A stretch of DNA of 32,196 bases from Blastocladiella emersonii ATCC 22665 (GCA_025594325.1 JANHCV010000020.1:1-32196); one strand, 5' to 3'. Positions 1 to 32,196 are shown, counted from the stretch's first letter. A program made the numbers and translations. The notes: generated by a model not told the origin, from the letters alone.

Positions 1-84
<84 letters not shown>
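1..84 (+). repeat. (CTG)28 microsatellite = polyQ-coding CAG tract of the C2 gene on the minus strand, cut by the window edge
   Basis: 28 perfect CTG units at 1-84, then TTG CTG TGG. On the minus strand it is in frame with ...HYQQQPQQ. Confidence 0.95.
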
Positions 85-88
<4 letters not shown>

Positions 89-918
89 TGTGGCTGCTGC
101 TGGTAGTGCGAAGGCGGGCGGTCGGGCAGCGCCGGTGGCGCGACATTTCCGCCATTTGGAACGTGGCCATGGCTCGGCGGCATGCTGGCCGACTGCGAGG
201 AGTGGGCATACCCGTAGTGTGCAGCAGTGGTGGTAGCGGTCGCCGAGGTGTGCGACGACGACGAGACCGACGCGACCGAGACGACCGAGTACCGGTGCGG
301 GTTCGAGTTGGCAAACGGGCCGCCGCCTGGCGCCACCAACTCGCCCTTTGGCGGTGGCAGCGGTGGCGGCGGAGCACCACCGCTGCCCGCGCTACCGCCT
401 GCCCCGAAACCGACACTGACACCGCCAATACCACCCGGCGAGACATGCTGCGCGGGGACGGCGCCCGTCAGGTGCGACACGACGGGGAACCCGCCCGACG
501 CGTCCGGCACCTCGGTGAGCACGCCCATCTCCGTGTGCACGCCTGCTGCCATCTGGCCAAACGACGGCGCGTTGCGGATCCCGAGGCGGCCCTCGAGCGT
601 CCCAATCACCTGGCCGGCGTGGTTCTGGATCGGCACGCGGAACTGGAACAGCGAGCCGCCGGTCGCGGGCAGGTCGCGCACGCGCAGCTGGCCGTGGCCG
701 ACGCGCGCGCCGAGCCGCTGCGAGTGGACCTCGATCTGGAGTGCGCCCTCGCGGTAGTCCTATTCGTGCGTTTGGTCGGGTCAGTGGGACTGAAAGTTGG
801 GAGAGGCCCAACACGAAGGCGCACAAACGTACGCGGTACGAGGTATTGAAGACGAGCAGCGGGGCCGTGTTCCAGCTCGCCGTCGGGCCGGCCTGCGTCG
901 CGGGCGGCGTGGTCACCT

Positions 919-954
<36 letters not shown>

Positions 955-1794
955 TGGAGGACGATCCACTGTCGCCGGCCGCCTCGTTGGCGGCGCCGCC
1001 ACTACCGGAACCAGCAGCCGTCGCAGGAGAGATTTCGAGGTACGGCTCGTGGATGTGGTTGCCCGCGACGCGCAGCAGGAGGGCCTCGAACGTGCACGTA
1101 ATGTCGTTCCACAGGTCCATGTCGAGGTCGAACAGGATCTTGCCTGCTGGATGCTTGGCGTGCTACGTGTGCGCGGACGGGTGCTCGTGAGTAGGGCGGC
1201 CAGTGCGGGCGGGTAACGGGTGGTGACGCACGTCGCGCAGCGGCAGCTCGTGCTTGATGGGCCCGCGGGCCAGCGTGAGCAGGTCTGGACGCCGAACTTG
1301 GGGTGTCAGCCGAGTTTAGGGGACGGCAGCAGCAATGGGACCGCACCGACTTCGCACGCCCCGATAAACTCGTCGCGGCGCCACCGGTCGTGGTCGTACA
1401 CCTCGATGCGGAACCGCTTGTCGCGGAGGTGCTCGACGTAGCGCTACTGGGTTTTGGCGGGCGCGGTGGGTCGGATCAGCCGCGGGTCCCCGTACGCCCA
1501 GTAACAGGAGGAAGCCGTGCGCACCGTCTCGTAGAAAAAGGTCACGTCAAAGTCCCACGCCGGATTCAGGTCGCGCTTGACGACCTCGGACTTGCCCGTC
1601 TTGAAGTTGTCGAACGAGAAGCGGAACTGCGGGTCGCTGGTGCCGTTGCTGTCGCGCGCGGGCAGGTTGAGGGCGCGCACGCTGTGCAGGCGGACGCGGA
1701 AGCGGGCGTTGCTCCCCCCGCCGGCACTTGTAGAGGAAGAGCCGGACGACAGGCCGCTGGTGCCCGTGCCGGTGCCGCCAAACGCGGAGGCCAT
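1..1794 (-). CDS. C2-domain protein (probably two C2 domains) with polyAla, Pro/Gly-rich and polyQ regions; 3' end outside window; left-arm copy
   Basis: Mirror of 30406-32196. N-terminal C2 motif RVRLHSVRALNLPARDSNGTSDPQFRF...VVKRDLNPAWD...IEVYDHDRWRRDEFIG; four GT-AG introns keep the frame. Confidence 0.85.
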
Positions 1795-2074
1795 GGTCTG
1801 TCGGTCGGGGTGTTCAGGGTGCCGTCGTCGGGTGCGCAGCGGTTGCGGCTGCTTCCATGAGATTTCGTCTGCGGGTTGGTTGCCTCGGCGGGGTGCGGGT
1901 CGAGAGGAGGGGGAGCGGCCCGCTGAGGCCCGCCGGCGGCAGAGTCCGAAAGTAAAGTGGCGGCGGCGGCGTGACCGCGTCGCTCTTTCTCTTTCCTGCC
2001 TGAGCTCGTCGGCGATGCTCTCTCCCCGGCCGGCACACTGGCCTTGAATGAAGCACTGATTAACACTGAACGTG
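1795..2074. promoter_or_regulatory. Short divergent intergenic region, probably a shared promoter of the C2 gene and the isochorismatase (mirrored at 30126-30405)
   Basis: Two ATGs face away from each other 280 bp apart. No specific element was identified. Confidence 0.5.
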
Positions 2075-2909
2075 ATGCTGTCCCGCCTGCTGCCCAAGAA
2101 TACGGCCTTTTTCCTCTGGTGAGTGAGTGCCCCGCCACGCCGCGTAACTAGCGCCTAACCCCTCGCTCGCCGCGGACAATACATACCCTGAACACACCCA
2201 GCGACGTCCAGGAGCGCTTCCGCCCGCTCATCTTCCGTTTTGCGGACGTGGTCGCCACCTCGGACAAGATGGCGCAGGCCGCCAAGGCGCTCGGCGTGCC
2301 GCTCGTCGTCACCGAGCAGAACCCGGCGCGCCTCGGCCAGACGGTCGCCGAGATTGACGTGGCACACGCCGCCGTCAACGTGCCCAAGACGCGCTTCTCC
2401 ATGGTCGTGCCCGAGGTGGCCGACCTGCTCGCCGAGCGCGCTGTCGAGAACGTGGTCGTGTTTGGCATCGAGGTGCGTGCCTTCACGTTAGACTCTGCCG
2501 TTGCCTCAAATCGCTGACAACCCTGTCCTCTCCAACAACAACAGAGCCACGTCTGCGTCACACAGACCGTCCTCGACCTCCTCGAGCAGGACCCCAAGCG
2601 CGCCGTCTACGTGCTCGCCGACGGCGTGTCGTCCATGAACCCGGCCGAGATCCCGGTCGCGCTCAAGGTTCATCCTAGCTCGTTCCCACTCGTTGCATGG
2701 ACCTGAACTCACTCGGCCTGCCCCTCGCATCGTGTGTGTAGCGCCTCTCGGCCGCGGGCGTCGTCGTCACCTCGTCCGAGTCGGTCCTGTTTGCCCTGCT
2801 CAAGGACGCCAAGCACGCCCAGTTCAAGGACGTGAGCAACCTCGTCAAGGCCTTCCAGACCCGCGGCCAGGACAATGAGCTGTTCAAGTTTGTCGCCAGC
2901 AAGCTCTGA
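2075..2909 (+). CDS. Isochorismatase-family (ISOC/YcaC-like) hydrolase, 201 aa, 4 exons (2075-2118, 2202-2472, 2545-2667, 2742-2909); left-arm copy
   Basis: Spliced product [23 protein letters not shown]...[13 protein letters not shown]...KTRFSMV...[20 protein letters not shown]...VLADGVSS...[12 protein letters not shown] carries the family motifs (CDVQE, TEQ, K-x-x-FS, GIE-x-HVCV). Exon total 606 nt. Confidence 0.92.
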
Positions 2910-4029
2910 AGACTGTTGGTTCTCGCTCGCTCTCTTCAGGCTGCGAGGATCCGGGTTGCTGGAATGCCATGTATCACTATTTGCGTGTCTTCATGTGCAT
3001 CAGTGTGTTGAGCTTGAGCGTGGGTCGGCAGCACGAAGCGGACCTGCAATGCCTCGATTGTGATCGCGATCGCGACGAACAATCATGTGACTGACGGCGG
3101 TGCGAGACGCGTCGTGTCGCGGGCGGCCGAGTGCGAGACGCGACGCGCGTGAAGTCGCGCCGCTGGCCATCGCGCGCCGCCCCCGCCCCTGCCCATGTCG
3201 ATTCCCGAAATCGCGCCTGCCGCGGCACTCGCCCCGCGGCCATCGCCTCGGGCCAAGGCGCAGGCCGATCCCGCCGTTGCTCCCGTGGTTACCGCGTCCC
3301 CCACGGCGTGGCTCGCGCGGCCATCGCGAACCCGCTGCTCACGCCCTCGCGCAGGGCACAGCAGCTGGCACAGCAGCTGGCTCAGCCTGATGGCCTCTCC
3401 TCGATGCCTCGCACCCAGGCGCCGCGTTGCGCACCCGCCGCGGCAAATAGGGAGGGATCGCGCCGCGAAGCTGGATGGATGGATGCCCTGCGCTGCAGAT
3501 CGGGATAGCGCGCGTGTATGCGCCGCGGTGAGAGACGCGGACGGGTGCCGCTCGCCACACGCCAAGGTCGACCATGACCTTGACCGGGACCCGATGGCGA
3601 TGGTCGCGTGGTCGCGTCCATCCCTTGTTGTTGCTGTTTCTGTTGCTGTTGCTGGCCGCGCGATCGCGTATCCCTGCTGCCAGCCTGGCATGGCGGGCGG
3701 CGTCACGCACGCACACACTTGGTCTGCCCCCGTTGCGTGCGTCGCGTACACATTTTGGTGGAGATAACCTGAACTACTCCTGACCCCCGCGCACGCACTC
3801 GGTCCTCGTCCACCGGCCCGACCCAGTCACCACCTCCACCACGCAGCTCGTCGCGCTGAACCCTCGCTCAGGTGCTCTCGCGACCTCTACCCTCTTCCCA
3901 AACCTGTTGCCCCACAAGCGGCCCTCCGTCTCGCCGTCGGGCCCTCCTTCAGCATCTGCCTCGGCCGCCTCGCTCCCGCTCCCAAACTCGCTGCTGCTCC
4001 GGCACCAATCATCCGTTTCCGTGGCAGCC

Positions 4030-7000
4030 ATGTCGCCCCCGTGCCCCATCAACCAGCTCTCCGGCAACTCTGGCGGCGGCGGCGGCGGCGGCGCCGGTGA
4101 CATTCCGGGCCTCGCCCGCCTCGACTCGAACCACGGCAGCCGCCCATCGCGGTTGAACGGCGGCGGCGGCGCCAGCGACGGCCCGAGCAGCCCCGATCGC
4201 CGCAAGCTCATGATCCAGGACGACGGCACGGGCAACGGCACCAGCAACACGTACAACGCAGGCTACGGCCTCGGCGGCCTCGGCGGGCTCGACAACGGCG
4301 GCGGGGGCGGTGCCACGTCGCCGTTCCCCGCATCGTCACGCAACAGCCTCGGCGGCGCCGGCGGCGGGTTCGGCGCGGGCGACGCGCTGCTCAACCCGAT
4401 GCAGGCAGCCTCGCTCGGGTTCGACATGGACGGGCACTCGAGTGGCTCGTCTTCGTCATCGCCGTTCGGTCTCTCTGGTGGCAGCGGCGGCCATGGCGGT
4501 AACACGCACCACGGTGGCGGCCACGGCCACGGCGGCCAAGAACAGCAGCAGGACCAGCGGTACGCGGGCGAGACCGAGCAGCGCGACTCGATCAACTCGT
4601 GGCGCGACTCCATGGACACGAGCCTGCGGCGCATCTTCGAGAACCTTCGTGTCGGTGCGTTTTCCTCTTGCTCATGGACTTGTTGACGTGTCGCGGTGTG
4701 GCGCAGCGCGCGTCGCCGGCTGATATCCCACCGATCACGCGCGCTGCGCCACATTCCCCGTCCTCGGCTTACTGCTGCGTCGGACCATCAGTCTCACTGC
4801 CACGGACCGCACCACATGTAGATATTGACCGCATGGAGGTCAACATCCGCCAGGCCGAGAACGAGGTCTTCCGCAAGGTACGGTCCCCCACCTCTGACCC
4901 GACCGCGAGCCTGACCAAACTGAACTGACGACCGACGACGCACCCCACCACAACCCGAAAACAGGAAGAGGAGGCCTTCTTCATGCGGCAGGACGAAATC
5001 GAAATCAACCAGCTGCTCAAGCGGCAGGCCGACGAGCTGCAGCGCGCCGAGGACGTGTACCAGGCCATGCTCGAGGAGCGCAAGACGCGCAAGCACACCA
5101 AGAAGCTGCAGGCCACGATCCACAAGGAGGCCAAGGCGCGGCACTCGAAAATGTGCTACCAGGACGAGGCCAAGCACATGGCCATGCAGCTGCGCAACAC
5201 GCTGGCGCAGCACCGCAAGCGCTTCGAGTTCCTCATCATCCACATCGAGGCCAAGCACGAGCGCCAGCGCGGCCAGCTCGAGGAGTCGCAGGAGCGCAAG
5301 ATCCGCGAGCAGCGCGCCCTGCTCGAGATCGAGACGCGCGGCCTGCGCGACGAGGTGCGCGCCGAGGTGTTCAAGGACTTCGCGTACCGCATGAACCACC
5401 AGACGGCGCTCGACAAGCACGTTGCCGAGCAGCTGCACGACCTGCAGCAGCTCGAGCTCAAGCACCGCAAGGAGCGCTTCGACGCCGAGGCCAAGGCGCT
5501 CGAGGAGGTGGCCTTTCTGCGGGCGACGCACCACCGCATCGTCAACGAGCTCGAGACCAAGCAGCGGCTCGACTACGCGGCCGAAAAGGAGCGCATCGAC
5601 GAGGCGCGCGAGAAGATCAAGCTGATGCAGCTCGACAGCAAGCACGGCGCCGAGCTCAAGTCGCTGCGCGCGCTGCACAAGGTGCAGGTGACGCTCGCCG
5701 CGCGGTCGCAGCGGCTGCTGGCGTCGCTGCGCCTGAAGAAGTGGCGCGAGATCCTGGCCGCCGAGGACGACTACGAGATTGAGACGTCGGCGAGCATGAC
5801 TGCCGCCGTCAGCCTGTCGACGGTCGGGTCGCAGGCCGCGCTCAACACGGGTGGCGGCGGTATCGGGGGTGGTGGTGCCAACGACTCGGACAATATCAGC
5901 CGGTCCGGGTCGACGAGCTCCATGGGCAGTCTCGCGCACCACTCGGCGGTCCTCGGCGGCGACGAGAGCGGCGCCGCGTCATCCTCGTTTGCGCTCGGCG
6001 GCATGGGTGGTGGTGGCATGGGCGGCTCGAGTATCGGGGGTGGCGCCGGCGGAGACGATGCCGAGACAGCCACGGCCGCGTCCGAGCAGCGCGACGCCGA
6101 CTCGGCCGCCGCGCGCCAGTTTGCCGAGGACCAGGCGCGCGCGCAGGAGCAGCTCAACCGGCTCCTCGAGCACCTCAAGGTCATGGTCGGGCGGCAGGCC
6201 GACGAGCTCAAGCGCGTGCGGCGCGAGAACGTCGAGGAGATGCGGCGGCTCGAGCGCAGCATCAAGACGCGCATGGACGAGCTCGACCTGCAGCAGGACA
6301 CGGAGATGCGCAGCATGCGCAAGTCGCACGAGTCGGCCATCAACGACATTGTCACGATGCAGCAGCGCGAGTACCAGATGGACGCCAACATCCGCGTCAC
6401 GGAGCGCAAGATGCTGACGGAGCGGCGCACGCTCAACTCGATCCTCGACGCCGTGTACGACGCCATTGTCAACATCCGCCCCGACGGCACCATCACGCGC
6501 TTCAACCTCTCGGCCGAGAAGATCTTTGGGTACAAGGCCGACGAGGTGATTGGCAAGAACGTGCGCATCCTGACCCCCGAGGAGGTGTCGCGCCGCCACG
6601 ACGGGTACCTCTCAAAGTACCTGACGACGGGCGTCAAGTCTAAGGCGTGGAACGGCATCTCCAACTTTGGCCGCCGCAAGGACTCGACGCTGTTCCCGAT
6701 CGTGCTGTCGGTCTCGGAGGTCAAGGAGGAGGACTTCCACCTGTTCACGGGCGTGGTGCGCGACGTGACCGACAAGCAGCGCAGCGAGGAGGCGGCGCGC
6801 GCCGAGCAGGAGCGCAAGGAGTCGGAGATGAAGGCGCTCATCTCGCTGCTCGACGTGGAGCGCACGAAATCGCAGTCGCTCATCAAGGAGATTCTGCCCG
6901 AGACGATCGCGGCGCAGCTGATGCGCGGCGAGGCCGTGGTCCCGCGCACGTACCCGGACGCGACGGTGCTGTACACGGACCTGGTCGGGTTCACGGCCAT

Positions 7001-7778
7001 CTCGTCGGCGGCGCGCCCGCTCGACGTGGTCGACATGCTCAACGACCTGTACTCGTCGTTCGACGAGATCATCGAGCAGTACGACGTGTACAAAGTCGAG
7101 ACGATCGGCGACTCGTACATGGTCGCCTCGGGCGTGCCCCGCCCGAACGGCACCAAGCACCTGACCGAGATGGCCAAGCTCGCGATCCACCTGGTCAAGG
7201 CGATCGGGTCCATCAAGATCCGGCACCGGGCCGATGTGACGCTGCGCATGCGCATCGGCATCCACACGGGCCCCGTGGTGGCGGGCGTCGTTGGCCGCAA
7301 GATGCCGCGGTATTGCCTGTTCGGCGACACGGTCGCGATTGCGAGCAAGATGGAGTCGTCGGGCGTGCCCATGAAGATCCAGGTCTCGGAGACGACGCAC
7401 GACCGGCTCGACGCCCTCGGCGGGTTCAACTTTGAGGCCCGCGGCGAGATGAACATTCCGGTCCGTACTACCCTACCTCTCTCGAGTGGGCGTGGTTTCG
7501 TGAGAAGCTTTGGTGGCTGACACTCGCTCCTGGTTGGCGTCACATCGTAGGGCAAGGGCATGATGCGCACCTACTTCCTCAGCGGGTGCGACGGCTTCAA
7601 CCCGACGTTCGTGCCCAAGGAGGAGGGCGCCGGATCGCCCCTCTCGGCCCTAGCCGTCAACCCCAACGCGGGTTCAACCAAGCTTGACCCCTCGGTGCCC
7701 GCCAACCCAGCCGATACCATTTCCGCTTCTCATGCCACGCATTATCAGCGTGACGACGCACGGGGTCAAGCCCTTTGA
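4030..7778 (+). CDS. GC-A: soluble helical-domain + PAS + class III guanylate-cyclase protein, ~1134 aa, 4 exons (4030-4654, 4822-4877, 4965-7460, 7551-7778)
   Basis: Cyclase motifs VLYTDLVGFT, VYKVETIGDSYM, RIGIHTGPVVAGVVG, PRYCLFGDTV, then RGEMNIP|GKGMMRTYFL across the last intron. PAS at ~6433-6773. GTP-specifying E and C present. Exon total 3405 nt. The start is inferred from the first in-frame ATG and N-terminal similarity to GC-B. Confidence 0.92.
6870..7150 (+). repeat. 281-bp block identical to 10896-11176 (cyclase domain of GC-A vs GC-B)
   Basis: Read base by base from tcgcagtcgctcatc... to ...cgcccgaacgg; offset 4026; no mismatch found by eye. Confidence 0.9.
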
Positions 7779-8381
7779 AATTTCGCGTTCGTTCGTCATG
7801 CACTTCTCAACCAACTTCTGGTACGGGATTTCGTGTCGGGACCTCTCCTGCGTTTCCAAACGACTGCTGACAGGACGTCACTAGTTCATTGCCTCTGTGT
7901 TTAGGTCCAATTCGTAATGGGAGACAATATGAGCCGCACATTCGCATCGCTCGCTTGCCCGTGAAAATCACGTGATGCGACGCGTTCTGGGAGATGTCTC
8001 ACACGCGAACGCGTTCCAACACCACCGGCGGAGAGGAGCAGGTCCAAGTGTGCGCAACGTGGAGAATTCCTGCCGTGATATCCCCCATCGGCCTTGGTAA
8101 CCTGTCCCGCCAGCCACTCGCTTACTGCAAGGTCACCCTTGGCCCCCCCTCCCTCTCGCCCCTAGACCACTTCTCCTCCTACTGGCATACCGGACATCGA
8201 GCAATTCTCGGTGTATCTTTACTCGGGTCATAGAAGTATCGCCATAGTACGCATCCATGATCACATCGGCAGTGAGTGGGCCAGGACACAACTAACTGTG
8301 TGATCGCTCGCATTCTCCAGGCCGATTCGTAACGCTCACCCTTAGATTTGAGGCTACCTGTCGCTTGTCCTCGTTCCCAAA

Positions 8382-11300
8382 ATGTCGTGCCCGTTCCGTC
8401 CCGCCGCGGCTGCCCCCGGGCCCCAGACTGGATCCGCCTACGACAGCGACGGCTATATTCCGGGCCTCGCTCCGATGCCGCGCCGCAACGTCGGCCCGCC
8501 CGTCATCGGCACCGACATGGACAACCAGCCCATGAACGCCCATCTTCCGGGTACTGCCCTTGCCTTCGCGCTCAAATCACCCATCCCGATCCTGCGAACT
8601 GACACTTGAACGCCGCTAGCACTCACGGCAGGCCTTGGCGACGCTCTGAACAGCAGCAACCCCTCCTCGCTCGTCGCGTCGGCTCCTCGTAAGTTTGGTG
8701 GGAGCGAGCTGGCCGCCAACTCGTCGAGCACGGCAGATGACTACCAGGGCCGCAACGGCTTCCTCGTCAACACCGATGACCAGCGCATGCAGGTGCAGCT
8801 CGACAACGACAACGACGACCCCGTCAACTCGTGGCGCGCCAACATGGACTCGTCCGTTCGCCGGATTTTCGAGAATCTTCGCTACGGTTCGTTGCTTATG
8901 ATCGGACGAGTTTTTTCCCCCCTCAGAGCTAACGCGCACCCGTGTCCTCGTCTACTAGACATTGACAAGATGGAGGTCAACATCCGCCAGGCCGAGAACG
9001 AGGTCTTCCGCAAGGTCCGTGTGCCCATGCAGCCGATCATTCGCCGAGTAGCCCACTAACGCGATCCGATGCGATTACCGTAGGAGGAGGAGGCTTTCTT
9101 CATTCGCCAGGATGAGATCGAGACCAACCAGCTGCTCAAGCGCCAGGCCGACGAGCTGCAGCGTGCCGAGGAGACTTATCTCACTATGCTCGAGGAGCGC
9201 AAGACGCGCAAGCACACCAAGAAGCTCCAGAAGCACATGCATAAGGAGGCCAAGGCCCGCGACGCCAAGATCATGCACCAGGACCACGCCAAGCACATGG
9301 TCTTCGAGGTCCGCAACACGCTGGCGCAGCACCGCAAGCGCTTCGAGTTCCTCATCATCCACATCGAGGGCAAGCAGGACCGCCAGCGCGTGCAGCTCGA
9401 GGAGTCGCAGGAGCGCAAGATGCGCGAGCAGCGCGCCCTACTCGACATTGAGACGCGCGGTCTTCCGGAGGACCTTCGCGCCGAGGTGTTCAAGGACTTC
9501 GCGTACCGCATGAACCACCAGTCGACTCTCGACAAGCACGTCGCCGAGCAGCTTCACGATATTCAGCAGCTCGAGCTCAAGCACCGCAAGGAGCGCTTCG
9601 ACGCCGAGGCCAAGGCGCTCGAGGAGGTGGCCTTCCTTCGTGCAGCCGATCAGCGGCGCGTGAACGAGGTCGACACTGTGCAGAAGGCCGAGCTGGCGAC
9701 CGAGAAGGAGCGCATCGAGGAGGCGCGCGAGAAGATCAAGCTGATGCAGCTCGCCGTCCATCACGCGGCCGAGGTCCGCAAGCTCAAGGCCCTGCACAAG
9801 ACACAGCTCGCCCTCTCGGCCCGGATGCAGCGCATGCAGGCCAGCCTGCGCCTCAAGAAGTGGCGCGAGCTGCTCCTCAGCGACGACGACGAGACCAACG
9901 AGTTTGCGAGCGCCTCTCTCTCGAACATGCAGGCGAGCGTCTCGACGGTCGGGTCCGGCGCCGGTATCGGCACCGGAGACGACATCAACAGCATGAGCCG
10001 CAGCGTCTCAAGCAGCTCGGTCGGTAGTAGCGTCTCGGTCGCCAACCACCTTCCCATCGGCGACTCGGGCGGCAGCACCGTCTCGGGCCCGTCCGCCGAC
10101 GACCAGTTTGAGCAGCGCGAGGCCGAGCAGGCGTTCTTCCGCGCCCTCGACGACGAGCAGATCAAGGCCCAAAACGACCTGAACAAGCTGCTCGAGGTTC
10201 TCGCCACCACGCAGACTCGACAGAAGGAGGCCCTCAAGAAGCTGCGCAAGGAGCAGAACGAGGCGCTGCACCAGACCGAGCGCGACATCAAGTCGCGCAT
10301 GGAGGAGCTCGATCTGCAGCAGGACACGGAGATGCGCAGTATGCGCAAGTCGCACGAGGCGACCATCATGGAGATCATGGCGACACAGCAGCGCGAGTAC
10401 CAGATGGACGCGAGTATCCGCCTGGCCGAGCGCAAGATGCTCAACGAGCGCCGCACGCTCAACTCGGTCCTCGACGCTGTCGCCGACGGCATCATCAACA
10501 TCCTGCCCGACGGCACCATCACGCGCTTCAACATGGCCGCGGAGCGCATCTTCGGGTACACGACGGCCGAGATTGTCGGCAAGAACGTGCGCATCCTGAC
10601 CCCCGACACGGTGAGCAAGCACCATGATGGCTACCTGCGCCGGTACCTCACGACGGGCGTCAAGAAGGTGATCGGCGTTGGAACTAGTTCTCTCGCACGA
10701 AACGCGTCCGGCGCCGAGTTCCCGATCCGCCTCAGCGTGTCCGAGGTCAAGGAGGAGGAGTTCCACCTGTTCACCGGGATCGTGCGCGACCTCACCGAGG
10801 AGCGCAAGCACGAGGCTGCAGTGCGCTCGGAGCTCGAGCGCAAGGAGTCGGAGATGAAGGCTCTAATTGACCTTCTCGACGTCGAGCGCACCAAGTCGCA
10901 GTCGCTCATCAAGGAGATTCTGCCCGAGACGATCGCGGCGCAGCTGATGCGCGGCGAGGCCGTGGTCCCGCGCACGTACCCGGACGCGACGGTGCTGTAC
11001 ACGGACCTGGTCGGGTTCACGGCCATCTCGTCGGCGGCGCGCCCGCTCGACGTGGTCGACATGCTCAACGACCTGTACTCGTCGTTCGACGAGATCATCG
11101 AGCAGTACGACGTGTACAAAGTCGAGACGATCGGCGACTCGTACATGGTCGCCTCGGGCGTGCCCCGCCCGAACGGGTCCAACCATCTCGTGGAGATCGC
11201 CAAGCTGGCCCTGCATCTCCTCAAGGCGATCGGGTCCATCAAGATCCGGCACCGGCCCGACGTGACGCTGCGCATGCGCATCGGCATCCACACGGGCCCC

Positions 11301-11702
11301 GTGGTGGCGGGCGTCGTCGGCCGCAAGATGCCGCGGTACTGCCTGTTCGGCGACACGGTCGCGATTGCGAGCAAGATGGAGTCGTCGGGCGTGCCCATGA
11401 AGATCCAGATCAGCGAGACCACGTACGACCGCCTCGAGGCCATGGGTGGCTACCACTTTGAGCCGCGTGGCGAGATGGGCATCCCCGGCAAGGGTATGAT
11501 CAAGACCTACTTCCTCACGTCGCTGGACAACTTCAACCCGACCTTCACCCCGCGTGACGACTCGGTCGCGTCGCCGCTCTCAGCGCTCGCCGTTGGCGGG
11601 ACCAAGGAGCACCGCGGTGGCGACATCTTTGTCGGGTCCAGCACCGTCCAGAGCAACCACCACGAGCACGCTGCCGCTCGCCCTCACGGAGCCCAAGGTT
11701 AG
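8382..11702 (+). CDS. GC-B: tandem paralog of GC-A (helical domain + PAS + guanylate cyclase), ~1036 aa, 4 exons (8382-8550, 8620-8886, 8959-9014, 9084-11702)
   Basis: Same domain order and motifs as GC-A and shares the 56-nt exon (DI-D-x-MEVNIRQAENEVFRK). All three introns have GT..AG with a branch-like site; exon total 3111 nt is open. Confidence 0.92.
10896..11176 (+). repeat. 281-bp block identical to 6870-7150 (and to its mirror 25050-25330)
   Basis: Same comparison. A second block, 11221-11408 vs 7195-7382, differs at only 4 positions. Confidence 0.9.
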
Positions 11703-16198: not shown

Positions 16199-16205
16199 TT
16201 ATATA
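16199..16205 (-). promoter_or_regulatory. Probable TATA box of the GH19-like gene
   Basis: TATATAA on the minus strand 80 bp upstream of the ATG, an isolated AT island in very GC-rich DNA. Confidence 0.55.
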
Positions 16206-18639: not shown

Positions 18640-18718
18640 ACTGCGCACCACGGGGAGACTATTGCAACACTGCGAATACATGCACTTGAAAGTATCATAT
18701 TACAATGGGAGAGAGCAA

Positions 18719-20170: not shown

Positions 20171-20711
20171 GGTTGCATGGAGTGGTGGGGTGTAGTGTGC
20201 GATGTGGGGGAAGAGAGGAGGGTAAATAGGAGAGCGGAGCGGCGACGGGATCGGCCTGGCCCTGGGCGCGGCCCCGGCGACGCGTGCGACGCGCGGGCTA
20301 CGCGCGGGCCACGCGCATGTGGGCCCACATGCGTCTCCCGAATTCGGCGCCGCCGCCGCGCCGCCGCCGCGCCACACGTTCAGTTCGGCGCCACCGACCC
20401 GCGGGCGGCCGCCACCGCGACTTGCGCGCCGCGTCGCTCGCGCCTCGCCTCCACCCGCAGCGCACGCCCTGTATCCGCGACGTTATCGACTCCACGCATC
20501 CGGGACTGCCCGCACTGCCACGCATCGACGCCGCCCGACCCGCCCATCGCGACTCTGGCTGCTGCTCCCCGCGCCGGAACCCATCCCGTCCGCCCTCCGA
20601 CCCCTAGACGACGCGGCCCGACTCGCGACCCGCCGCCCACGACCTCGCGATCTGATCCGCTCCTGCACCGTCCTCGAGCCCATACATCCGCCTGCTGCTC
20701 GTTATCTCGCC

Positions 20712-22153: not shown

Positions 22154-22516
22154 TGGTCCGGCCCTGCTCCGTGAGCCTCCTCTCTTTTGCCGTCACTTCA
22201 TCTTCCCGCGTATACATGCAGTCTTCTTACAGGCCCCGCACTCGCCTCCTTCCCTCCGCGACGCTTCAGTTGGTCAGCGTTCAGCTTTTTAAGGATAACA
22301 CCGCTCTCATGAGCTTACTTTCGGCCGAACGGCCGTGGACGACCTCAAACACAGCGAGGCCACCAACAACGAGACAGGGCAAGGGTCGCGGCGCCATGAC
22401 CATCGTGGTCTCGCTCCAGGCGATTCACACCTGTCGCAGGCCCCGTCCGCAGGCGAGCTCCCGACCGACCACGCATCATGCTTGTTACAAGACGGGAGAA
22501 TGAATTTAATTGAAAT

Positions 22517-24010
22517 CTACAGGGCGTCCATGCTCGAGTGACCAGCGGATCGCTGTGGCGACACGGGACGGCGGCGCGAGCTTGCTGCTGGCTTGCTGTC
22601 GAGCTCGTCCGGCGTGGGCTGCATGAACGAGAAGGTGCTCATCGGCGACGCGGGAAGCGGGACGAGGGCCGGACTTGACGGCTCGGCAGCCGATGCCCGC
22701 CGGATGGACCACGCCGTGGTCGCTGGCTCGGCCGAGGGCCGAGACTCGAGCGGAGCGAGGGCCATGGACTGCTGCCCGGCGTGCCGAGACGTGTCGACGG
22801 TCATGGACCGGATCTGCGTCATGCTTGGCCGTGCCGAGGTGGTTCCTGGGTGATAACCGGCCGTCGTTGCTGGGTTCGAAGCGGGCGCGGTGATCGGGAC
22901 CGAGTGGTGCACGCCGCCGTGGGTGCTGTCGTAGTCGCCCTCCGAGTCGGACGAGAAGAACGGCAGGCTGTCGGAATCTCGGCCATGCGAACGAGAGAAT
23001 GGTGGGAGTCCTTCGCGACGATTGAGCTCGGCCTCGCCATCGACGAAGAGAACGATCCGGCCCCACCACCGGTTGCGCCCCATCTTGCCCTTGGCGATCC
23101 AGTGGTAAATTGAGAAAAGCGTGACGACGATACAGAAAGCGAACACAACGTCAATGGAATAGTGATACGTCGTGAAGATGAGCGAGTAGAGAGCGAGCGC
23201 CGTGAAGAGGACGGCGAAAACGCGAAGCAGGTAGTTGTCCGAGTACATAAGGTACAGGCGCGCGACCATGGTGAAGAAGATCGAGTGGCCGGAGAAGAAG
23301 ACGTCGCCGCAGCTGAAGCGCGTCTGCGTGAAGAGCAGAAAGGCGTCCCAGAAGAGATTCGGGTCGGGCCGCGCATCGCACGTCAGGTAAGGGTTGGGCA
23401 GGATGGTCATGAGCACGGTCGGGGCGCGCAGCAGGTACACGGTGCCGGAGATGTACATGGTGCGGCGGAAGACGGTCGCGGCGCGCGACTTGAGTGTGAG
23501 GATGCGCGCAAAGATCAGGACGGCCGAGGCGCGGACCATCCAGTCCGAGAAGTCGTTTGGCAGGCCGGAGCGCACAAAGACCTGGAAGGACCAGCGCTGG
23601 AGCGGATCGATGAGCGGCTTGCGCTCGTCGACGGGCAGCACGCTGTTCGGGTTGATACGATCGACGACCGAGTTGCTGAGGCAGGTGATGTAGGAGCACA
23701 CGAGGAAGTAGAGCAGCGCCGGCGCGCTCAGCTGCAGGTCGTAGCGCGAGCGCCAGAGTGTGAAGTACGGCCGGACGCGCTGGCGCCACGTCTTGGCCGG
23801 CGGGCCGCCAGGCGGCCCCGAAGAAGTGCCGGCGGGTGCTGGTAGAGCGGCGCCATTCGCCGTGGCAGATTGAGCGGCGGCGCCCGCGGCGGTGGCGGAT
23901 GTTGCAGCGTCGCGGGTCGATTGCATGGCAGGGAAGGATTGCATCGAGTGTAGCTGGTCGTCGGCATCGCGCGCCAGAGCGTAGCGGGAGGCGGAGCGAG
24001 GACCGGCCAT
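22517..24010 (-). CDS. Sphingomyelin-synthase-family (PAP2_C) ceramide phosphotransferase, ~497 aa, intronless
   Basis: About six hydrophobic segments plus family motifs PLID, TILPNP, CGDVFFSGHS and HYSIDVVFA (catalytic H-H-D). The first ATG is at 24010; the track ORF starts at a GTG at 24046. Confidence 0.85.
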   Translation of the reverse strand: MAGPRSASRYALARDADDQLHSMQSFPAMQSTRDAATSATAAGAAAQSATANGAALPAPAGTSSGPPGGPPAKTWRQRVRPYFTLWRSRYDLQLSAPALLYFLVCSYITCLSNSVVDRINPNSVLPVDERKPLIDPLQRWSFQVFVRSGLPNDFSDWMVRASAVLIFARILTLKSRAATVFRRTMYISGTVYLLRAPTVLMTILPNPYLTCDARPDPNLFWDAFLLFTQTRFSCGDVFFSGHSIFFTMVARLYLMYSDNYLLRVFAVLFTALALYSLIFTTYHYSIDVVFAFCIVVTLFSIYHWIAKGKMGRNRWWGRIVLFVDGEAELNRREGLPPFSRSHGRDSDSLPFFSSDSEGDYDSTHGGVHHSVPITAPASNPATTAGYHPGTTSARPSMTQIRSMTVDTSRHAGQQSMALAPLESRPSAEPATTAWSIRRASAAEPSSPALVPLPASPMSTFSFMQPTPDELDSKPAASSRRRPVSPQRSAGHSSMDAL

Positions 24011-24436
24011 GGTGGTGGTGGTGGTGCCGGGTGGGCGGGGAGGCACGGCCAGGCAGGGCGGCAGGGATGGGCGACAATCGGCGCCGAGAGGTCAGAATCC
24101 TGTTCGGGCAGCGCCGATGCGGGTGCGGCGAGGGTTGGCGGGGGCCGAGACGGCAATGCAAACAGCGTAGCGAGACGGAGAGCGACAGCAAGGACCCGAT
24201 GCCGAGCGGGATGAGACTGTTTGGGAGAGACTAAGGCCGGCGGATCGCGGGCAAGGCGAGGCGATGGCATCCGCGAGGCTCGCTGCCGCCGGATCCCGTC
24301 AGCAGGGGAGACGAAAACGCGCATCACGTGTGTCTCCTCAAAGGTGTCTCAAAAAATAGCCAGCGGCTGCGCCACCACGACGCGTCGCGCCCAGCGATCG
24401 GGGGGAGGACATGAACGGTTTCAATTCAAGTGACAA

Positions 24437-27400
24437 TCACTGAGCTGGCTGCTGGAAGCGGTGGTCGAGCGGCTCCATGCCCGATGATGCAGAGCCATCG
24501 TGGTTCGCGCCGCCGAGCTTGGCCGGGCCTGCGTTGGGGTTGACGGCGAGGGCCGAGAGGGGCGATCCGGCGCCCTCCTCCTTGGGCACGAACGTCGGGT
24601 TGAAGCCGTCGCACCCGCTGAGGAAGTAGGTGCGCATCATGCCCTTGCCCTACGATGTGACGCCAACCAGGAGCGAGTGTCAGCCACCAAAGCTTCTCAC
24701 GAAACCACGCCCACTCGAGAGAGGTAGGGTAGTACGGACCGGAATGTTCATCTCGCCGCGGGCCTCAAAGTTGAACCCGCCGAGGGCGTCGAGCCGGTCG
24801 TGCGTCGTCTCCGAGACCTGGATCTTCATGGGCACGCCCGACGACTCCATCTTGCTCGCAATCGCGACCGTGTCGCCGAACAGGCAATACCGCGGCATCT
24901 TGCGGCCAACGACGCCCGCCACCACGGGGCCCGTGTGGATGCCGATGCGCATGCGCAGCGTCACATCGGCCCGGTGCCGGATCTTGATGGACCCGATCGC
25001 CTTGACCAGGTGGATCGCGAGCTTGGCCATCTCGGTCAGGTGCTTGGTGCCGTTCGGGCGGGGCACGCCCGAGGCGACCATGTACGAGTCGCCGATCGTC
25101 TCGACTTTGTACACGTCGTACTGCTCGATGATCTCGTCGAACGACGAGTACAGGTCGTTGAGCATGTCGACCACGTCGAGCGGGCGCGCCGCCGACGAGA
25201 TGGCCGTGAACCCGACCAGGTCCGTGTACAGCACCGTCGCGTCCGGGTACGTGCGCGGGACCACGGCCTCGCCGCGCATCAGCTGCGCCGCGATCGTCTC
25301 GGGCAGAATCTCCTTGATGAGCGACTGCGATTTCGTGCGCTCCACGTCGAGCAGCGAGATGAGCGCCTTCATCTCCGACTCCTTGCGCTCCTGCTCGGCG
25401 CGCGCCGCCTCCTCGCTGCGCTGCTTGTCGGTCACGTCGCGCACCACGCCCGTGAACAGGTGGAAGTCCTCCTCCTTGACCTCCGAGACCGACAGCACGA
25501 TCGGGAACAGCGTCGAGTCCTTGCGGCGGCCAAAGTTGGAGATGCCGTTCCACGCCTTAGACTTGACGCCCGTCGTCAGGTACTTTGAGAGGTACCCGTC
25601 GTGGCGGCGCGACACCTCCTCGGGGGTCAGGATGCGCACGTTCTTGCCAATCACCTCGTCGGCCTTGTACCCAAAGATCTTCTCGGCCGAGAGGTTGAAG
25701 CGCGTGATGGTGCCGTCGGGGCGGATGTTGACAATGGCGTCGTACACGGCGTCGAGGATCGAGTTGAGCGTGCGCCGCTCCGTCAGCATCTTGCGCTCCG
25801 TGACGCGGATGTTGGCGTCCATCTGGTACTCGCGCTGCTGCATCGTGACAATGTCGTTGATGGCCGACTCGTGCGACTTGCGCATGCTGCGCATCTCCGT
25901 GTCCTGCTGCAGGTCGAGCTCGTCCATGCGCGTCTTGATGCTGCGCTCGAGCCGCCGCATCTCCTCGACGTTCTCGCGCCGCACGCGCTTGAGCTCGTCG
26001 GCCTGCCGCCCGACCATGACCTTGAGGTGCTCGAGGAGCCGGTTGAGCTGCTCCTGCGCGCGCGCCTGGTCCTCGGCAAACTGGCGCGCGGCGGCCGAGT
26101 CGGCGTCGCGCTGCTCGGACGCGGCCGTGGCTGTCTCGGCATCGTCTCCGCCGGCGCCACCCCCGATACTCGAGCCGCCCATGCCACCACCACCCATGCC
26201 GCCGAGCGCAAACGAGGATGACGCGGCGCCGCTCTCGTCGCCGCCGAGGACCGCCGAGTGGTGCGCGAGACTGCCCATGGAGCTCGTCGACCCGGACCGG
26301 CTGATATTGTCCGAGTCGTTGGCACCACCACCCCCGATACCGCCGCCACCCGTGTTGAGCGCGGCCTGCGACCCGACCGTCGACAGGCTGACGGCGGCAG
26401 TCATGCTCGCCGACGTCTCAATCTCGTAGTCGTCCTCGGCGGCCAGGATCTCGCGCCACTTCTTCAGGCGCAGCGACGCCAGCAGCCGCTGCGACCGCGC
26501 GGCGAGCGTCACCTGCACCTTGTGCAGCGCGCGCAGCGACTTGAGCTCGGCGCCGTGCTTGCTGTCGAGCTGCATCAGCTTGATCTTCTCGCGCGCCTCG
26601 TCGATGCGCTCCTTTTCGGCCGCGTAGTCGAGCCGCTGCTTGGTCTCGAGCTCGTTGACGATGCGGTGGTGCGTCGCCCGCAGAAAGGCCACCTCCTCGA
26701 GCGCCTTGGCCTCGGCGTCGAAGCGCTCCTTGCGGTGCTTGAGCTCGAGCTGCTGCAGGTCGTGCAGCTGCTCGGCAACGTGCTTGTCGAGCGCCGTCTG
26801 GTGGTTCATGCGGTACGCGAAGTCCTTGAACACCTCGGCGCGCACCTCGTCGCGCAGGCCGCGCGTCTCGATCTCGAGCAGGGCGCGCTGCTCGCGGATC
26901 TTGCGCTCCTGCGACTCCTCGAGCTGGCCGCGCTGGCGCTCGTGCTTGGCCTCGATGTGGATGATGAGGAACTCGAAGCGCTTGCGGTGCTGCGCCAGCG
27001 TGTTGCGCAGCTGCATGGCCATGTGCTTGGCCTCGTCCTGGTAGCACATTTTCGAGTGCCGCGCCTTGGCCTCCTTGTGGATCGTGGCCTGCAGCTTCTT
27101 GGTGTGCTTGCGCGTCTTGCGCTCCTCGAGCATGGCCTGGTACACGTCCTCGGCGCGCTGCAGCTCGTCGGCCTGCCGCTTGAGCAGCTGGTTGATTTCG
27201 ATTTCGTCCTGCCGCATGAAGAAGGCCTCCTCTTCCTGTTTTCGGGTTGTGGTGGGGTGCGTCGTCGGTCGTCAGTTCAGTTTGGTCAGGCTCGCGGTCG
27301 GGTCAGAGGTGGGGGACCGTACCTTGCGGAAGACCTCGTTCTCGGCCTGGCGGATGTTGACCTCCATGCGGTCAATATCTACATGTGGTGCGGTCCGTGG

Positions 27401-28170
27401 CAGTGAGACTGATGGTCCGACGCAGCAGTAAGCCGAGGACGGGGAATGTGGCGCAGCGCGCGTGATCGGTGGGATATCAGCCGGCGACGCGCGCTGCGCC
27501 ACACCGCGACACGTCAACAAGTCCATGAGCAAGAGGAAAACGCACCGACACGAAGGTTCTCGAAGATGCGCCGCAGGCTCGTGTCCATGGAGTCGCGCCA
27601 CGAGTTGATCGAGTCGCGCTGCTCGGTCTCGCCCGCGTACCGCTGGTCCTGCTGCTGTTCTTGGCCGCCGTGGCCGTGGCCGCCACCGTGGTGCGTGTTA
27701 CCGCCATGGCCGCCGCTGCCACCAGAGAGACCGAACGGCGATGACGAAGACGAGCCACTCGAGTGCCCGTCCATGTCGAACCCGAGCGAGGCTGCCTGCA
27801 TCGGGTTGAGCAGCGCGTCGCCCGCGCCGAACCCGCCGCCGGCGCCGCCGAGGCTGTTGCGTGACGATGCGGGGAACGGCGACGTGGCACCGCCCCCGCC
27901 GCCGTTGTCGAGCCCGCCGAGGCCGCCGAGGCCGTAGCCTGCGTTGTACGTGTTGCTGGTGCCGTTGCCCGTGCCGTCGTCCTGGATCATGAGCTTGCGG
28001 CGATCGGGGCTGCTCGGGCCGTCGCTGGCGCCGCCGCCGCCGTTCAACCGCGATGGGCGGCTGCCGTGGTTCGAGTCGAGGCGGGCGAGGCCCGGAATGT
28101 CACCGGCGCCGCCGCCGCCGCCGCCGCCAGAGTTGCCGGAGAGCTGGTTGATGGGGCACGGGGGCGACAT
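24437..28170 (-). CDS. GC-A': right-arm copy of the PAS-guanylate cyclase, ~1129 aa, with a different C-terminal tail
   Basis: Mirror of 4030-7651. The last exon (24649-24437) reads ...LSALAVNPNAGPAKLGGANHDGSASSGMEPLDHRFQQPAQ*. Confidence 0.92.
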
Positions 28171-29290
28171 GGCTGCCACGGAAACGGATGATTGGTGCCG
28201 GAGCAGCAGCGAGTTTGGGAGCGGGAGCGAGGCGGCCGAGGCAGATGCTGAAGGAGGGCCCGACGGCGAGACGGAGGGCCGCTTGTGGGGCAACAGGTTT
28301 GGGAAGAGGGTAGAGGTCGCGAGAGCACCTGAGCGAGGGTTCAGCGCGACGAGCTGCGTGGTGGAGGTGGTGACTGGGTCGGGCCGGTGGACGAGGACCG
28401 AGTGCGTGCGCGGGGGTCAGGAGTAGTTCAGGTTATCTCCACCAAAATGTGTACGCGACGCACGCAACGGGGGCAGACCAAGTGTGTGCGTGCGTGACGC
28501 CGCCCGCCATGCCAGGCTGGCAGCAGGGATACGCGATCGCGCGGCCAGCAACAGCAACAGAAACAGCAACAACAAGGGATGGACGCGACCACGCGACCAT
28601 CGCCATCGGGTCCCGGTCAAGGTCATGGTCGACCTTGGCGTGTGGCGAGCGGCACCCGTCCGCGTCTCTCACCGCGGCGCATACACGCGCGCTATCCCGA
28701 TCTGCAGCGCAGGGCATCCATCCATCCAGCTTCGCGGCGCGATCCCTCCCTATTTGCCGCGGCGGGTGCGCAACGCGGCGCCTGGGTGCGAGGCATCGAG
28801 GAGAGGCCATCAGGCTGAGCCAGCTGCTGTGCCAGCTGCTGTGCCCTGCGCGAGGGCGTGAGCAGCGGGTTCGCGATGGCCGCGCGAGCCACGCCGTGGG
28901 GGACGCGGTAACCACGGGAGCAACGGCGGGATCGGCCTGCGCCTTGGCCCGAGGCGATGGCCGCGGGGCGAGTGCCGCGGCAGGCGCGATTTCGGGAATC
29001 GACATGGGCAGGGGCGGGGGCGGCGCGCGATGGCCAGCGGCGCGACTTCACGCGCGTCGCGTCTCGCACTCGGCCGCCCGCGACACGACGCGTCTCGCAC
29101 CGCCGTCAGTCACATGATTGTTCGTCGCGATCGCGATCACAATCGAGGCATTGCAGGTCCGCTTCGTGCTGCCGACCCACGCTCAAGCTCAACACACTGA
29201 TGCACATGAAGACACGCAAATAGTGATACATGGCATTCCAGCAACCCGGATCCTCGCAGCCTGAAGAGAGCGAGCGAGAACCAACAGTCT

Positions 29291-30125
29291 TCAGAGCTTG
29301 CTGGCGACAAACTTGAACAGCTCATTGTCCTGGCCGCGGGTCTGGAAGGCCTTGACGAGGTTGCTCACGTCCTTGAACTGGGCGTGCTTGGCGTCCTTGA
29401 GCAGGGCAAACAGGACCGACTCGGACGAGGTGACGACGACGCCCGCGGCCGAGAGGCGCTACACACACGATGCGAGGGGCAGGCCGAGTGAGTTCAGGTC
29501 CATGCAACGAGTGGGAACGAGCTAGGATGAACCTTGAGCGCGACCGGGATCTCGGCCGGGTTCATGGACGACACGCCGTCGGCGAGCACGTAGACGGCGC
29601 GCTTGGGGTCCTGCTCGAGGAGGTCGAGGACGGTCTGTGTGACGCAGACGTGGCTCTGTTGTTGTTGGAGAGGACAGGGTTGTCAGCGATTTGAGGCAAC
29701 GGCAGAGTCTAACGTGAAGGCACGCACCTCGATGCCAAACACGACCACGTTCTCGACAGCGCGCTCGGCGAGCAGGTCGGCCACCTCGGGCACGACCATG
29801 GAGAAGCGCGTCTTGGGCACGTTGACGGCGGCGTGTGCCACGTCAATCTCGGCGACCGTCTGGCCGAGGCGCGCCGGGTTCTGCTCGGTGACGACGAGCG
29901 GCACGCCGAGCGCCTTGGCGGCCTGCGCCATCTTGTCCGAGGTGGCGACCACGTCCGCAAAACGGAAGATGAGCGGGCGGAAGCGCTCCTGGACGTCGCT
30001 GGGTGTGTTCAGGGTATGTATTGTCCGCGGCGAGCGAGGGGTTAGGCGCTAGTTACGCGGCGTGGCGGGGCACTCACTCACCAGAGGAAAAAGGCCGTAT
30101 TCTTGGGCAGCAGGCGGGACAGCAT
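29291..30125 (-). CDS. Isochorismatase-family hydrolase, right-arm copy
   Basis: Mirror of 2075-2909. Confidence 0.92.
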
Positions 30126-30405
30126 CACGTTCAGTGTTAATCAGTGCTTCATTCAAGGCCAGTGTGCCGGCCGGGGAGAGAGCATCGCCGACGAGCTCAG
30201 GCAGGAAAGAGAAAGAGCGACGCGGTCACGCCGCCGCCGCCACTTTACTTTCGGACTCTGCCGCCGGCGGGCCTCAGCGGGCCGCTCCCCCTCCTCTCGA
30301 CCCGCACCCCGCCGAGGCAACCAACCCGCAGACGAAATCTCATGGAAGCAGCCGCAACCGCTGCGCACCCGACGACGGCACCCTGAACACCCCGACCGAC
30401 AGACC

Positions 30406-31245
30406 ATGGCCTCCGCGTTTGGCGGCACCGGCACGGGCACCAGCGGCCTGTCGTCCGGCTCTTCCTCTACAAGTGCCGGCGGGGGGAGCAACGCCCGCTT
30501 CCGCGTCCGCCTGCACAGCGTGCGCGCCCTCAACCTGCCCGCGCGCGACAGCAACGGCACCAGCGACCCGCAGTTCCGCTTCTCGTTCGACAACTTCAAG
30601 ACGGGCAAGTCCGAGGTCGTCAAGCGCGACCTGAATCCGGCGTGGGACTTTGACGTGACCTTTTTCTACGAGACGGTGCGCACGGCTTCCTCCTGTTACT
30701 GGGCGTACGGGGACCCGCGGCTGATCCGACCCACCGCGCCCGCCAAAACCCAGTAGCGCTACGTCGAGCACCTCCGCGACAAGCGGTTCCGCATCGAGGT
30801 GTACGACCACGACCGGTGGCGCCGCGACGAGTTTATCGGGGCGTGCGAAGTCGGTGCGGTCCCATTGCTGCTGCCGTCCCCTAAACTCGGCTGACACCCC
30901 AAGTTCGGCGTCCAGACCTGCTCACGCTGGCCCGCGGGCCCATCAAGCACGAGCTGCCGCTGCGCGACGTGCGTCACCACCCGTTACCCGCCCGCACTGG
31001 CCGCCCTACTCACGAGCACCCGTCCGCGCACACGTAGCACGCCAAGCATCCAGCAGGCAAGATCCTGTTCGACCTCGACATGGACCTGTGGAACGACATT
31101 ACGTGCACGTTCGAGGCCCTCCTGCTGCGCGTCGCGGGCAACCACATCCACGAGCCGTACCTCGAAATCTCTCCTGCGACGGCTGCTGGTTCCGGTAGTG
31201 GCGGCGCCGCCAACGAGGCGGCCGGCGACAGTGGATCGTCCTCCA

Positions 31246-31281
<36 letters not shown>

Positions 31282-32111
31282 AGGTGACCACGCCGCCCGC
31301 GACGCAGGCCGGCCCGACGGCGAGCTGGAACACGGCCCCGCTGCTCGTCTTCAATACCTCGTACCGCGTACGTTTGTGCGCCTTCGTGTTGGGCCTCTCC
31401 CAACTTTCAGTCCCACTGACCCGACCAAACGCACGAATAGGACTACCGCGAGGGCGCACTCCAGATCGAGGTCCACTCGCAGCGGCTCGGCGCGCGCGTC
31501 GGCCACGGCCAGCTGCGCGTGCGCGACCTGCCCGCGACCGGCGGCTCGCTGTTCCAGTTCCGCGTGCCGATCCAGAACCACGCCGGCCAGGTGATTGGGA
31601 CGCTCGAGGGCCGCCTCGGGATCCGCAACGCGCCGTCGTTTGGCCAGATGGCAGCAGGCGTGCACACGGAGATGGGCGTGCTCACCGAGGTGCCGGACGC
31701 GTCGGGCGGGTTCCCCGTCGTGTCGCACCTGACGGGCGCCGTCCCCGCGCAGCATGTCTCGCCGGGTGGTATTGGCGGTGTCAGTGTCGGTTTCGGGGCA
31801 GGCGGTAGCGCGGGCAGCGGTGGTGCTCCGCCGCCACCGCTGCCACCGCCAAAGGGCGAGTTGGTGGCGCCAGGCGGCGGCCCGTTTGCCAACTCGAACC
31901 CGCACCGGTACTCGGTCGTCTCGGTCGCGTCGGTCTCGTCGTCGTCGCACACCTCGGCGACCGCTACCACCACTGCTGCACACTACGGGTATGCCCACTC
32001 CTCGCAGTCGGCCAGCATGCCGCCGAGCCATGGCCACGTTCCAAATGGCGGAAATGTCGCGCCACCGGCGCTGCCCGACCGCCCGCCTTCGCACTACCAG
32101 CAGCAGCCACA

Positions 32112-32196
<85 letters not shown>
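30406..32196 (+). CDS. C2-domain/polyQ protein, right-arm copy; exons 30406-30675, 30757-30853, 30916-30968, 31038-31367, 31441->32196 (3' partial)
   Basis: Spliced frame is open: MASAF...C2...YET|RYVEHLRDKRFRIEVYDHD...|DLLTLARGPIKHELPLRD|HAKHPAGKILFDLDM...SYR|DYREGALQIEV...HYQQQPQ(Q)n. Confidence 0.85.
32116..32196 (+). repeat. (CAG)27 microsatellite, polyQ-coding, cut by the window edge
   Basis: 27 perfect CAG units preceded by CAC TAC CAG CAG CAG CCA CAG CAA, in frame with the last visible exon of the C2 gene. Confidence 0.95.

Follow-up and report, generated by a model that had tools for sequence, protein, structure and literature searches.

Does a contig whose two ends mirror each other represent a palindrome in the chromosome, or was one sequence written out twice during assembly, and if the palindrome is real, what keeps its arms alike? 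The question is raised by contig JANHCV010000020.1 of the blastoclad fungus Blastocladiella emersonii ATCC 22665 (GCA_025594325.1), an unplaced contig of 32,196 bp, the whole of which is the stretch of DNA analysed here (the window). Self-comparison shows two inverted arms, at 4-7651 and 24549-32196, which are exact reverse complements of each other over 7,648 nt with 0 mismatches; arm positions pair by the rule p+q=32200, and a mismatch is first seen at 7652. Zero differences over this length correspond to an arm divergence of no more than 0.04% (95% upper bound). The arms enclose a spacer of 16,897 nt (7652-24548), and within the window the only partner of spacer sequence is a diverged guanylate cyclase paralog. 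The guanine-cytosine (GC) content is 66% overall, 67.1% in the arms and 65.5% in the spacer. A first-pass annotation of the sequence had described identical inverted arms of at least 7.65 kb on either side of a 16.9-kb spacer, a description that these counts bear out. The structure is likely to be a genuine nuclear inverted segmental duplication, that is, a palindrome with a spacer, whose arms are at least 7,648 bp long and are presumably kept identical by arm-to-arm conversion.

Arms and spacer in the sequencing reads

The published assembly of B. emersonii was made from PacBio HiFi reads (run SRR19593111, mean length 10.5 kb, 6.37 Gb in total) with the La Jolla Assembler, which gave 247 contigs; purge_dups and a minimap2 overlap filter reduced these to 21 contigs of 34.27 Mb, and polishing was carried out with Pilon on the basis of Illumina data (PMC9730499). 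The words "palindrome" and "inverted" are absent from the genome paper (PMC9730499). The copy number of the arms was assessed from four public DNA runs of the same sample, in the form of Logan contigs built with k=31, and the read-derived contigs were compared with the window over 4850-10651 on the left and from 14835 to ~31275 on the right. The 2022 run, X1, whose contigs reach 73 kb at most and whose depth is ~120, is taken to be the PacBio HiFi run, and X2 behaves like an Illumina run. The loose ends of the contigs from the remaining two runs, X3 and X4, carry what are presumably 454 adaptor and linker sequences. The parts of the window and their depths in X1 are as follows.

4-7651: left arm, 7,648 nt, exact reverse complement of 24549-32196; X1 word depth 236-252 over 4850-7651
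7652-24548: spacer, gene-dense and single-copy, 16,897 nt; X1 word depth 121.4 (7622-8999) and 122.4 (9,744-nt contig ending at 24578)
24549-32196: right arm, 7,648 nt; X1 word depth 236-270 out to ~31275

In the left arm, word depth in X1 is 252.2, 243.5, 238.2 and 235.7 in successive contigs, of which the final one stops exactly at 7651, and the spacer contig covering 7622-8999 begins 30 nt (k-1) within the left arm at a depth of 121.4; further spacer contigs on the left side have depths of 127.8, 130 and 130.8. On the right, the 9,744-nt contig with a depth of 122.4 runs from within the spacer to 24578, which is 30 nt (k-1) into the right arm, and a right-arm contig begins at 24549. Arm depths on this side range from 235.7 to 269.6 (including 255.4 and 266.9), the highest value being that of a 3,938-nt contig that extends to ~31275. 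The arm:spacer depth ratio in X1 is ~2.1 when weighted by length (range 2.0-2.2), and the depths at the two spacer ends, 121.4 and 122.4, together approximate the depth of the arm contig at the junctions. Contigs of X2 have the same break points as those of X1 at both junctions, and pieces of X3 begin at 7622 and at 24549, with neither junction crossed by any piece.

Because both spacer contigs hold the full k-1 overlap with an arm, neither spacer end has a second continuation; the lack of a side branch at the spacer ends means, in turn, that every spacer copy has an arm on each side, which excludes a single-copy arm. An inversion polymorphism without duplication was also considered and is ruled out by the presence of an arm at both ends of every spacer molecule. 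Moreover, the X1 arm depth of 236-270 is higher than the published mean HiFi coverage of ~186x (6.365 Gb / 34.27 Mb), so that the arms cannot be single-copy, provided that X1 is the published HiFi run. No alternative letters were found in X1 or X2 over the inner 3 kb of the arms, and there is therefore no sign of collapsed diverged paralogs in that region.

The first-pass annotation had named depth, junctions in reads and arm-to-arm variants as the observations by which a nuclear palindrome could be told from a collapsed consensus used twice. Arm depths of 236-270 against spacer depths of 121-130 in X1 give the doubling expected of two arms, both 7651/7652 and 24548/24549 are present in the read-derived contigs of X1, X2 and X3, and arm-to-arm variants are absent from X1 and X2 across the inner 3 kb. 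With approximately twofold arm depth and both junctions in the reads of three library types, its view of the palindrome as nuclear and real is upheld, and the collapsed consensus that it had left standing as an alternative is not. Its wider claim of a palindrome that is stable and possibly much larger is supported only in part.

Arm genes, inner edges and proposed gene conversion

Each arm carries a C2-domain gene with a polyglutamine (polyQ) tail, an isochorismatase-family gene and a PAS-guanylate cyclase gene, and these three genes are duplicated together with their introns and intergenic DNA, as had been claimed. A third cyclase lies in the spacer.

212-1794, minus strand: C2-domain/polyQ gene, left copy; annotated as 433 amino acids (P0052); C2 domain
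2075-2909, plus strand: isochorismatase-family gene, left copy; 201 amino acids; PF00857
4030-7778, plus strand: PAS-guanylate cyclase A, left copy; Pfam PAS and Guanylate_cyc; stop codon at 7776-7778; last 42 codons in the spacer
8786-11702 (about), plus strand: PAS-guanylate cyclase B, spacer gene and third, diverged paralog, in direct orientation relative to the left arm; protein 68% identical to A
24437-28170, minus strand: PAS-guanylate cyclase A', right copy; 1,129 amino acids (P0001, H9P43_010198); last 37 codons in the spacer
29291-30125, minus strand: isochorismatase-family gene, right copy; 201 amino acids; PF00857
30406-32186, plus strand: C2-domain/polyQ gene, right copy; annotated as 498 amino acids; continues into the CAG tract and stops 10 nt short of the contig end

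The arm boundary falls inside the cyclase coding region, A and A' being the same up to ...SPLSALA and then continuing into tails of 42 and 37 residues, respectively. Immediately inside this boundary, exact identity gives way to a short zone of partial identity on each side.

7652-7686: left edge zone; partner 24514-24548; 80% identical over 35 nt, unrelated beyond it
24514-24548: right edge zone; partner of 7652-7686

Just past 7651, 7 of 35 positions are mismatched, rising to 23 of 35 in the following 35 nt, and this edge zone accounts for the left repeat being reported as 4-7684 by a repeat search. The difference between the arm body and its edge (0/7648 against 7/35 mismatches) has p=2e-17 in a Fisher exact test, and at least 28 matches in 35 positions would arise by chance with P = 1e-9. 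No diverged homology was found past the 35-nt edge over 1.4 kb of the spacer flanks; an older and larger palindrome reaching deeper into the spacer was accordingly rejected, there being no homology beyond the 35 nt.

An identical body with a diverged rim would mean that the duplication is not brand new, since a young copy would be identical right to its end, and a diverged rim is expected under recurrent conversion, a conversion tract requiring homologous sequence to either side of it. Read in this way, the sequence suggests an older inverted duplication whose identity is kept by arm-to-arm gene conversion. Recurrent conversion between the arms would homogenise the body of the repeat and would seldom reach its edges, so that the innermost 35 bp could have been left to diverge to 80% while the other 7.6 kb stayed identical. 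The predicted consequences are that three genes would be present in double dose, that two cyclase isoforms would differ only in their C-terminal tails, the arm boundary being inside the coding region, and that recombination between the arms could invert the spacer.

Cyclases A and B are 77-94% identical in nucleotide sequence, in blocks, and 68% identical as proteins. Within their catalytic domain, A (~6869-7149) and B (~10895-11175) have in common an exact run of 281 nt; the region of this run shows 91% identity across 675 nt, and its identity to a dispersed paralog on contig 12 is 94.5%. The run suggests a short conversion tract between neighbouring cyclase paralogs, and ongoing conversion is favoured over a single recent event because of it. 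A signature of GC-biased conversion was also considered as evidence and was dropped, the difference between 67.1% and 65.5% being too small and confounded by coding content.

Although the arms are identical, their gene models in the public annotation are not: a single left-hand model of 2,181 amino acids joins cyclases A and B, and the right-hand model of A' has 1,129 amino acids; the C2/polyQ gene is likewise annotated with 433 amino acids on the left and 498 on the right. Because models of identical arms are inconsistent, nucleotide-cyclase gene counts for the genome are slightly off.

Spacer, contig ends and competing explanations

At least seven protein-coding genes lie within the 16.9 kb of the spacer. 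Conserved housekeeping genes had been predicted in it, and diphthamide-synthesis, GDA1/CD39, WD40, septin and PAP2_C genes were identified. Together with cyclase B, the spacer genes, and the tracts at the two contig ends, are the following.

1-102, plus strand: (CTG)28 tract with degenerate units, left contig end; on the minus strand it encodes the polyQ end of the C2 protein
12824-14543, plus strand: diphthamide-synthesis gene; PF01866
14795-16119, minus strand: repeat-rich gene with no known function; 417 amino acids; no Pfam match
16858-18639, plus strand: GDA1/CD39 nucleoside phosphatase gene; Pfam
18904-20170, minus strand: WD40-repeat gene; domain match
21029-22153, plus strand: septin gene; Pfam
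22517-24010, minus strand: PAP2_C (sphingomyelin-synthase-like) gene; Pfam
32098-32196, plus strand: (CAG)27 tract, right contig end; encodes the polyQ end of the C2 protein, truncated where the contig stops

The repeat-rich gene on the minus strand at 14795-16119 is built of degenerate tandem units of 9-45 nt. No tRNA genes, Rfam families or telomere motif (AAACCT) were found in the window, and nothing of this kind therefore indicates a mini-chromosome end, a palindrome of the ribosomal DNA type or an organelle.

The left and right contig ends fall in one and the same trinucleotide tract of the arms, and a CAG tract that the assembler could not pass is probably the reason why the contig is short and unplaced. 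From the way in which such assemblers work, the contig would correspond to an edge of the de Bruijn graph that starts and ends at one vertex in opposite orientations, the tract tangling the graph. Since the assembly stops inside the tract on both sides, the true arm length and the outer limits of the arms are not given by the contig; since both contig ends truncate the C2/polyQ gene, each arm runs at least slightly further. The first-pass annotation had the arms running off the window: identity does reach both ends, but the window is the whole contig, and it is the assembly that stops, within the CAG tract. According to the annotation, the arm proteins are encoded on no other contig of the assembly, so that the continuation is either missing from the final purged assembly or unannotated. 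An exhaustive profile-free search of 1.8 billion representative proteins with the C-terminal exon of the C2/polyQ gene returned only the left-arm model P0052 and two distant multi-C2 proteins. With at least 28 uninterrupted units, the CAG tract codes for the glutamine-rich end of the C2-domain protein, and it may be longer or variable in reads.

Several other explanations have been weighed against a palindrome maintained by conversion. It is very improbable that the locus has one arm only, whose consensus was used at both spacer ends, or that two haplotypes were joined head to head. The contig is indeed a small unplaced one from a heavily purged assembly (247 contigs reduced to 21), the two arms stop at one and the same base in low-complexity sequence, as they would if one graph vertex had been used in both orientations, and false palindromes have precedent (PMC8494291). 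Nevertheless, an artefact of this kind, haplotype scaffolding included, is largely refuted by arm word depth in the HiFi-derived contigs that is 2.0-2.2 times that of the spacer and lies above the published genome mean, and by both junctions in the reads, where the spacer ends reach 30 nt into an arm without a side branch and X2 and X3 repeat the break points. Scarcely credible, too, is some other functional inverted-repeat structure, such as a centromere, an organelle or plasmid flip-flop repeat, or a foldback amplicon. Candida tropicalis centromeres do have homogenised inverted repeats around a central core (PMC7292649), and inverted repeats of Candida albicans drive inversions (PMC6591007), but both arms and spacer are packed with ordinary nuclear genes having spliceosomal introns, telomere motif and RNA genes are absent from the window, and the copy number is 2:1 (~2.1 in X1) and not amplified. 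A centromere of the Schizosaccharomyces pombe or C. tropicalis type was rejected, as a gene-poor core is absent and the 16.9-kb spacer holds at least seven genes. A foldback or palindromic amplicon was set aside because little or no spacer and a copy number above two would be expected, the 16.9-kb spacer being far larger than in foldback amplicons, and an organelle or plasmid repeat because the content consists of nuclear intron-bearing genes (septin, WD40, GDA1/CD39 and the cyclases) with no rRNA or tRNA genes.

Closer to the favoured reading, and unlikely to a lesser degree, are two accounts in which a real palindrome has a different history or extent. The arms could derive from a very recent single inverted duplication, by long conversion or break-induced copying, with no ongoing homogenisation, in which copying entered an older diverged cyclase copy and proceeded outward for at least 7.6 kb. 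Zero differences in 7,648 nt are what a very young copy shows, an older inverted paralog from the multi-copy cyclase family at this locus could have been the point of entry, and the diverged edge is just 35 nt long; the 281-nt exact tract between A and B, which suggests conversion acting at the locus, speaks against this account, which is rather doubtful. It is about equally doubtful that the contig is the centre of a much larger palindrome or of an isochromosome-like structure with arms extending far past the CAG tracts. Perfect identity as far as both contig ends, a C2/polyQ gene cut at both ends, so that each arm continues at least slightly, and arm genes that occur on no other contig, their continuation possibly purged or collapsed, would all fit such a structure. 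There is, however, no direct evidence for it, and a variable CAG tract would break the assembly whatever the length of the arms. A wider form of the favoured reading is offered as a tentative speculation and is itself unlikely: B. emersonii may have many gene-bearing palindromes as a genome-wide habit, kept homogenised by very active intrachromosomal conversion, in which case the arms here would reach far past the CAG tracts and the spacer may switch between orientations. To our knowledge, no sexual cycle has been described for B. emersonii. If such a habit were real, palindromes could act as devices for self-repair and dosage, as on the non-recombining Y, and would explain the unplaced parts of the assembly, with part of the genome possibly collapsed or purged.

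A number of observations count against a palindrome maintained by conversion, or limit how firmly it can be held. In X2, apparently the Illumina run, the arm:spacer ratio is only ~1.5 and noisy. Continuity of the spacer across 10651-14835 comes from the published assembly alone, and all four runs belong to one strain and to the one sample record behind that assembly, from which they are not fully independent. The spacer depth of 121-130 amounts to only ~0.65 of the published mean of ~186x, and arm depth is judged relative to the spacer and to this mean. The outer arm boundaries are not seen, as both arms stop at contig ends. As for conversion itself, the case is drawn from only 35 nt of diverged edge, and a single recent copying event would leave the same pattern if it began within an older, diverged paralog. 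Possible reasons for the low spacer depth include a k-mer depth well below base depth, a genome of which part was collapsed in or purged from the 34-Mb assembly, and a locus present in only some nuclei.

Relatives and comparison with known systems

No neighbouring genes are held in common with the cyclase loci of B. britannica, Catenaria anguillulae or Allomyces macrogynus, and the palindrome is therefore not datable by synteny. It appears, from the loci compared, to be specific to the B. emersonii lineage; on the same footing, clustering of cyclases is common to blastoclads and the inverted arrangement is not. Two dispersed cyclase paralogs of B. emersonii itself, on contigs 12 and 3, have neighbours that differ from those of the palindrome locus. 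The dispersed cyclase paralog P0003, on JANHCV010000003.1, has ~10 kb upstream of it a gene (1-286 of the extracted locus) whose product contains a Cas12f1-like_TNB domain, of the TnpB/Fanzor type. In C. anguillulae, MCFL01000003.1 carries three PAS-guanylate cyclase genes within 16 kb (5650-21425 of the extracted locus), all in direct orientation.

For users of the B. emersonii genome, a genuine palindrome means that contig 20 is neither junk nor a haplotig, and that three genes exist in two exact copies, among them a PAS-guanylate cyclase from the sensory repertoire surveyed in the genome paper. It would also extend the known range of homogenised gene-bearing palindromes to a fungal lineage that diverged early, and would provide a locus at which arm-to-arm conversion, inversion of the spacer and instability of the CAG tract could be measured.

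Arm-to-arm conversion is known to maintain the palindromes of mammalian sex chromosomes, including P1-P8 of the human Y and those of the primate X (PMC3723533, PMC8327919, PMC8981503). The B. emersonii locus resembles them in having kilobase-scale inverted arms that are at least 99.9% identical, a unique spacer, whole intron-containing protein-coding genes in the arms and possible signs of homogenisation by gene conversion. It differs in being fungal, with nothing to indicate that it is situated on a sex chromosome or a non-recombining one, in the shorter length of the arms as seen (at least 7.6 kb), and in a spacer of over twice the arm length that is full of housekeeping genes. Moreover, conversion in B. 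emersonii is deduced from the 35-nt diverged edge, and neither from interspecies comparison nor from pedigrees.

Long identical inverted repeats had been called unusual around ordinary nuclear fungal genes in the first-pass annotation, which is overstated, as C. albicans has gene-bearing long inverted repeats with kilobase-scale spacers (PMC6591007). In the study of Todd et al. (2019), these include 3.2-kb copies of 99.5% identity that lie 11.3 kb apart and contain four open reading frames, and such repeats give rise to inversions, changes in copy number and isochromosomes (PMC6591007). As in C. albicans, the B. emersonii copies are situated in a fungal nuclear genome and span several complete open reading frames with intergenic DNA; the arms are, however, more than twice as long and perfectly identical, and they belong to a very distant lineage (Blastocladiomycota). 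Long inverted repeats with gene pairs have also been described in Caenorhabditis elegans and are interpreted as actively maintained by gene conversion (PMC1803023). The two cases share near-perfect inverted repeats with homologous gene pairs on ordinary chromosomes, and organism and scale differ.

A cautionary parallel is provided by the asexual Adineta vaga, in which palindromes of the AV13 draft were absent from an improved assembly and were put down to phased haplotypes that had been scaffolded wrongly (PMC8494291). Those, too, were palindromic gene-bearing segments from an assembly, but the B. emersonii locus differs in its 2:1 depth and in the presence of both junctions in the reads. The kind of structure is already known, and the locus adds another case of a gene-bearing palindrome; what is particular to it is that it fills a whole unplaced contig, that the arm boundary makes two cyclase tail isoforms, and that it ends in a long CAG tract.

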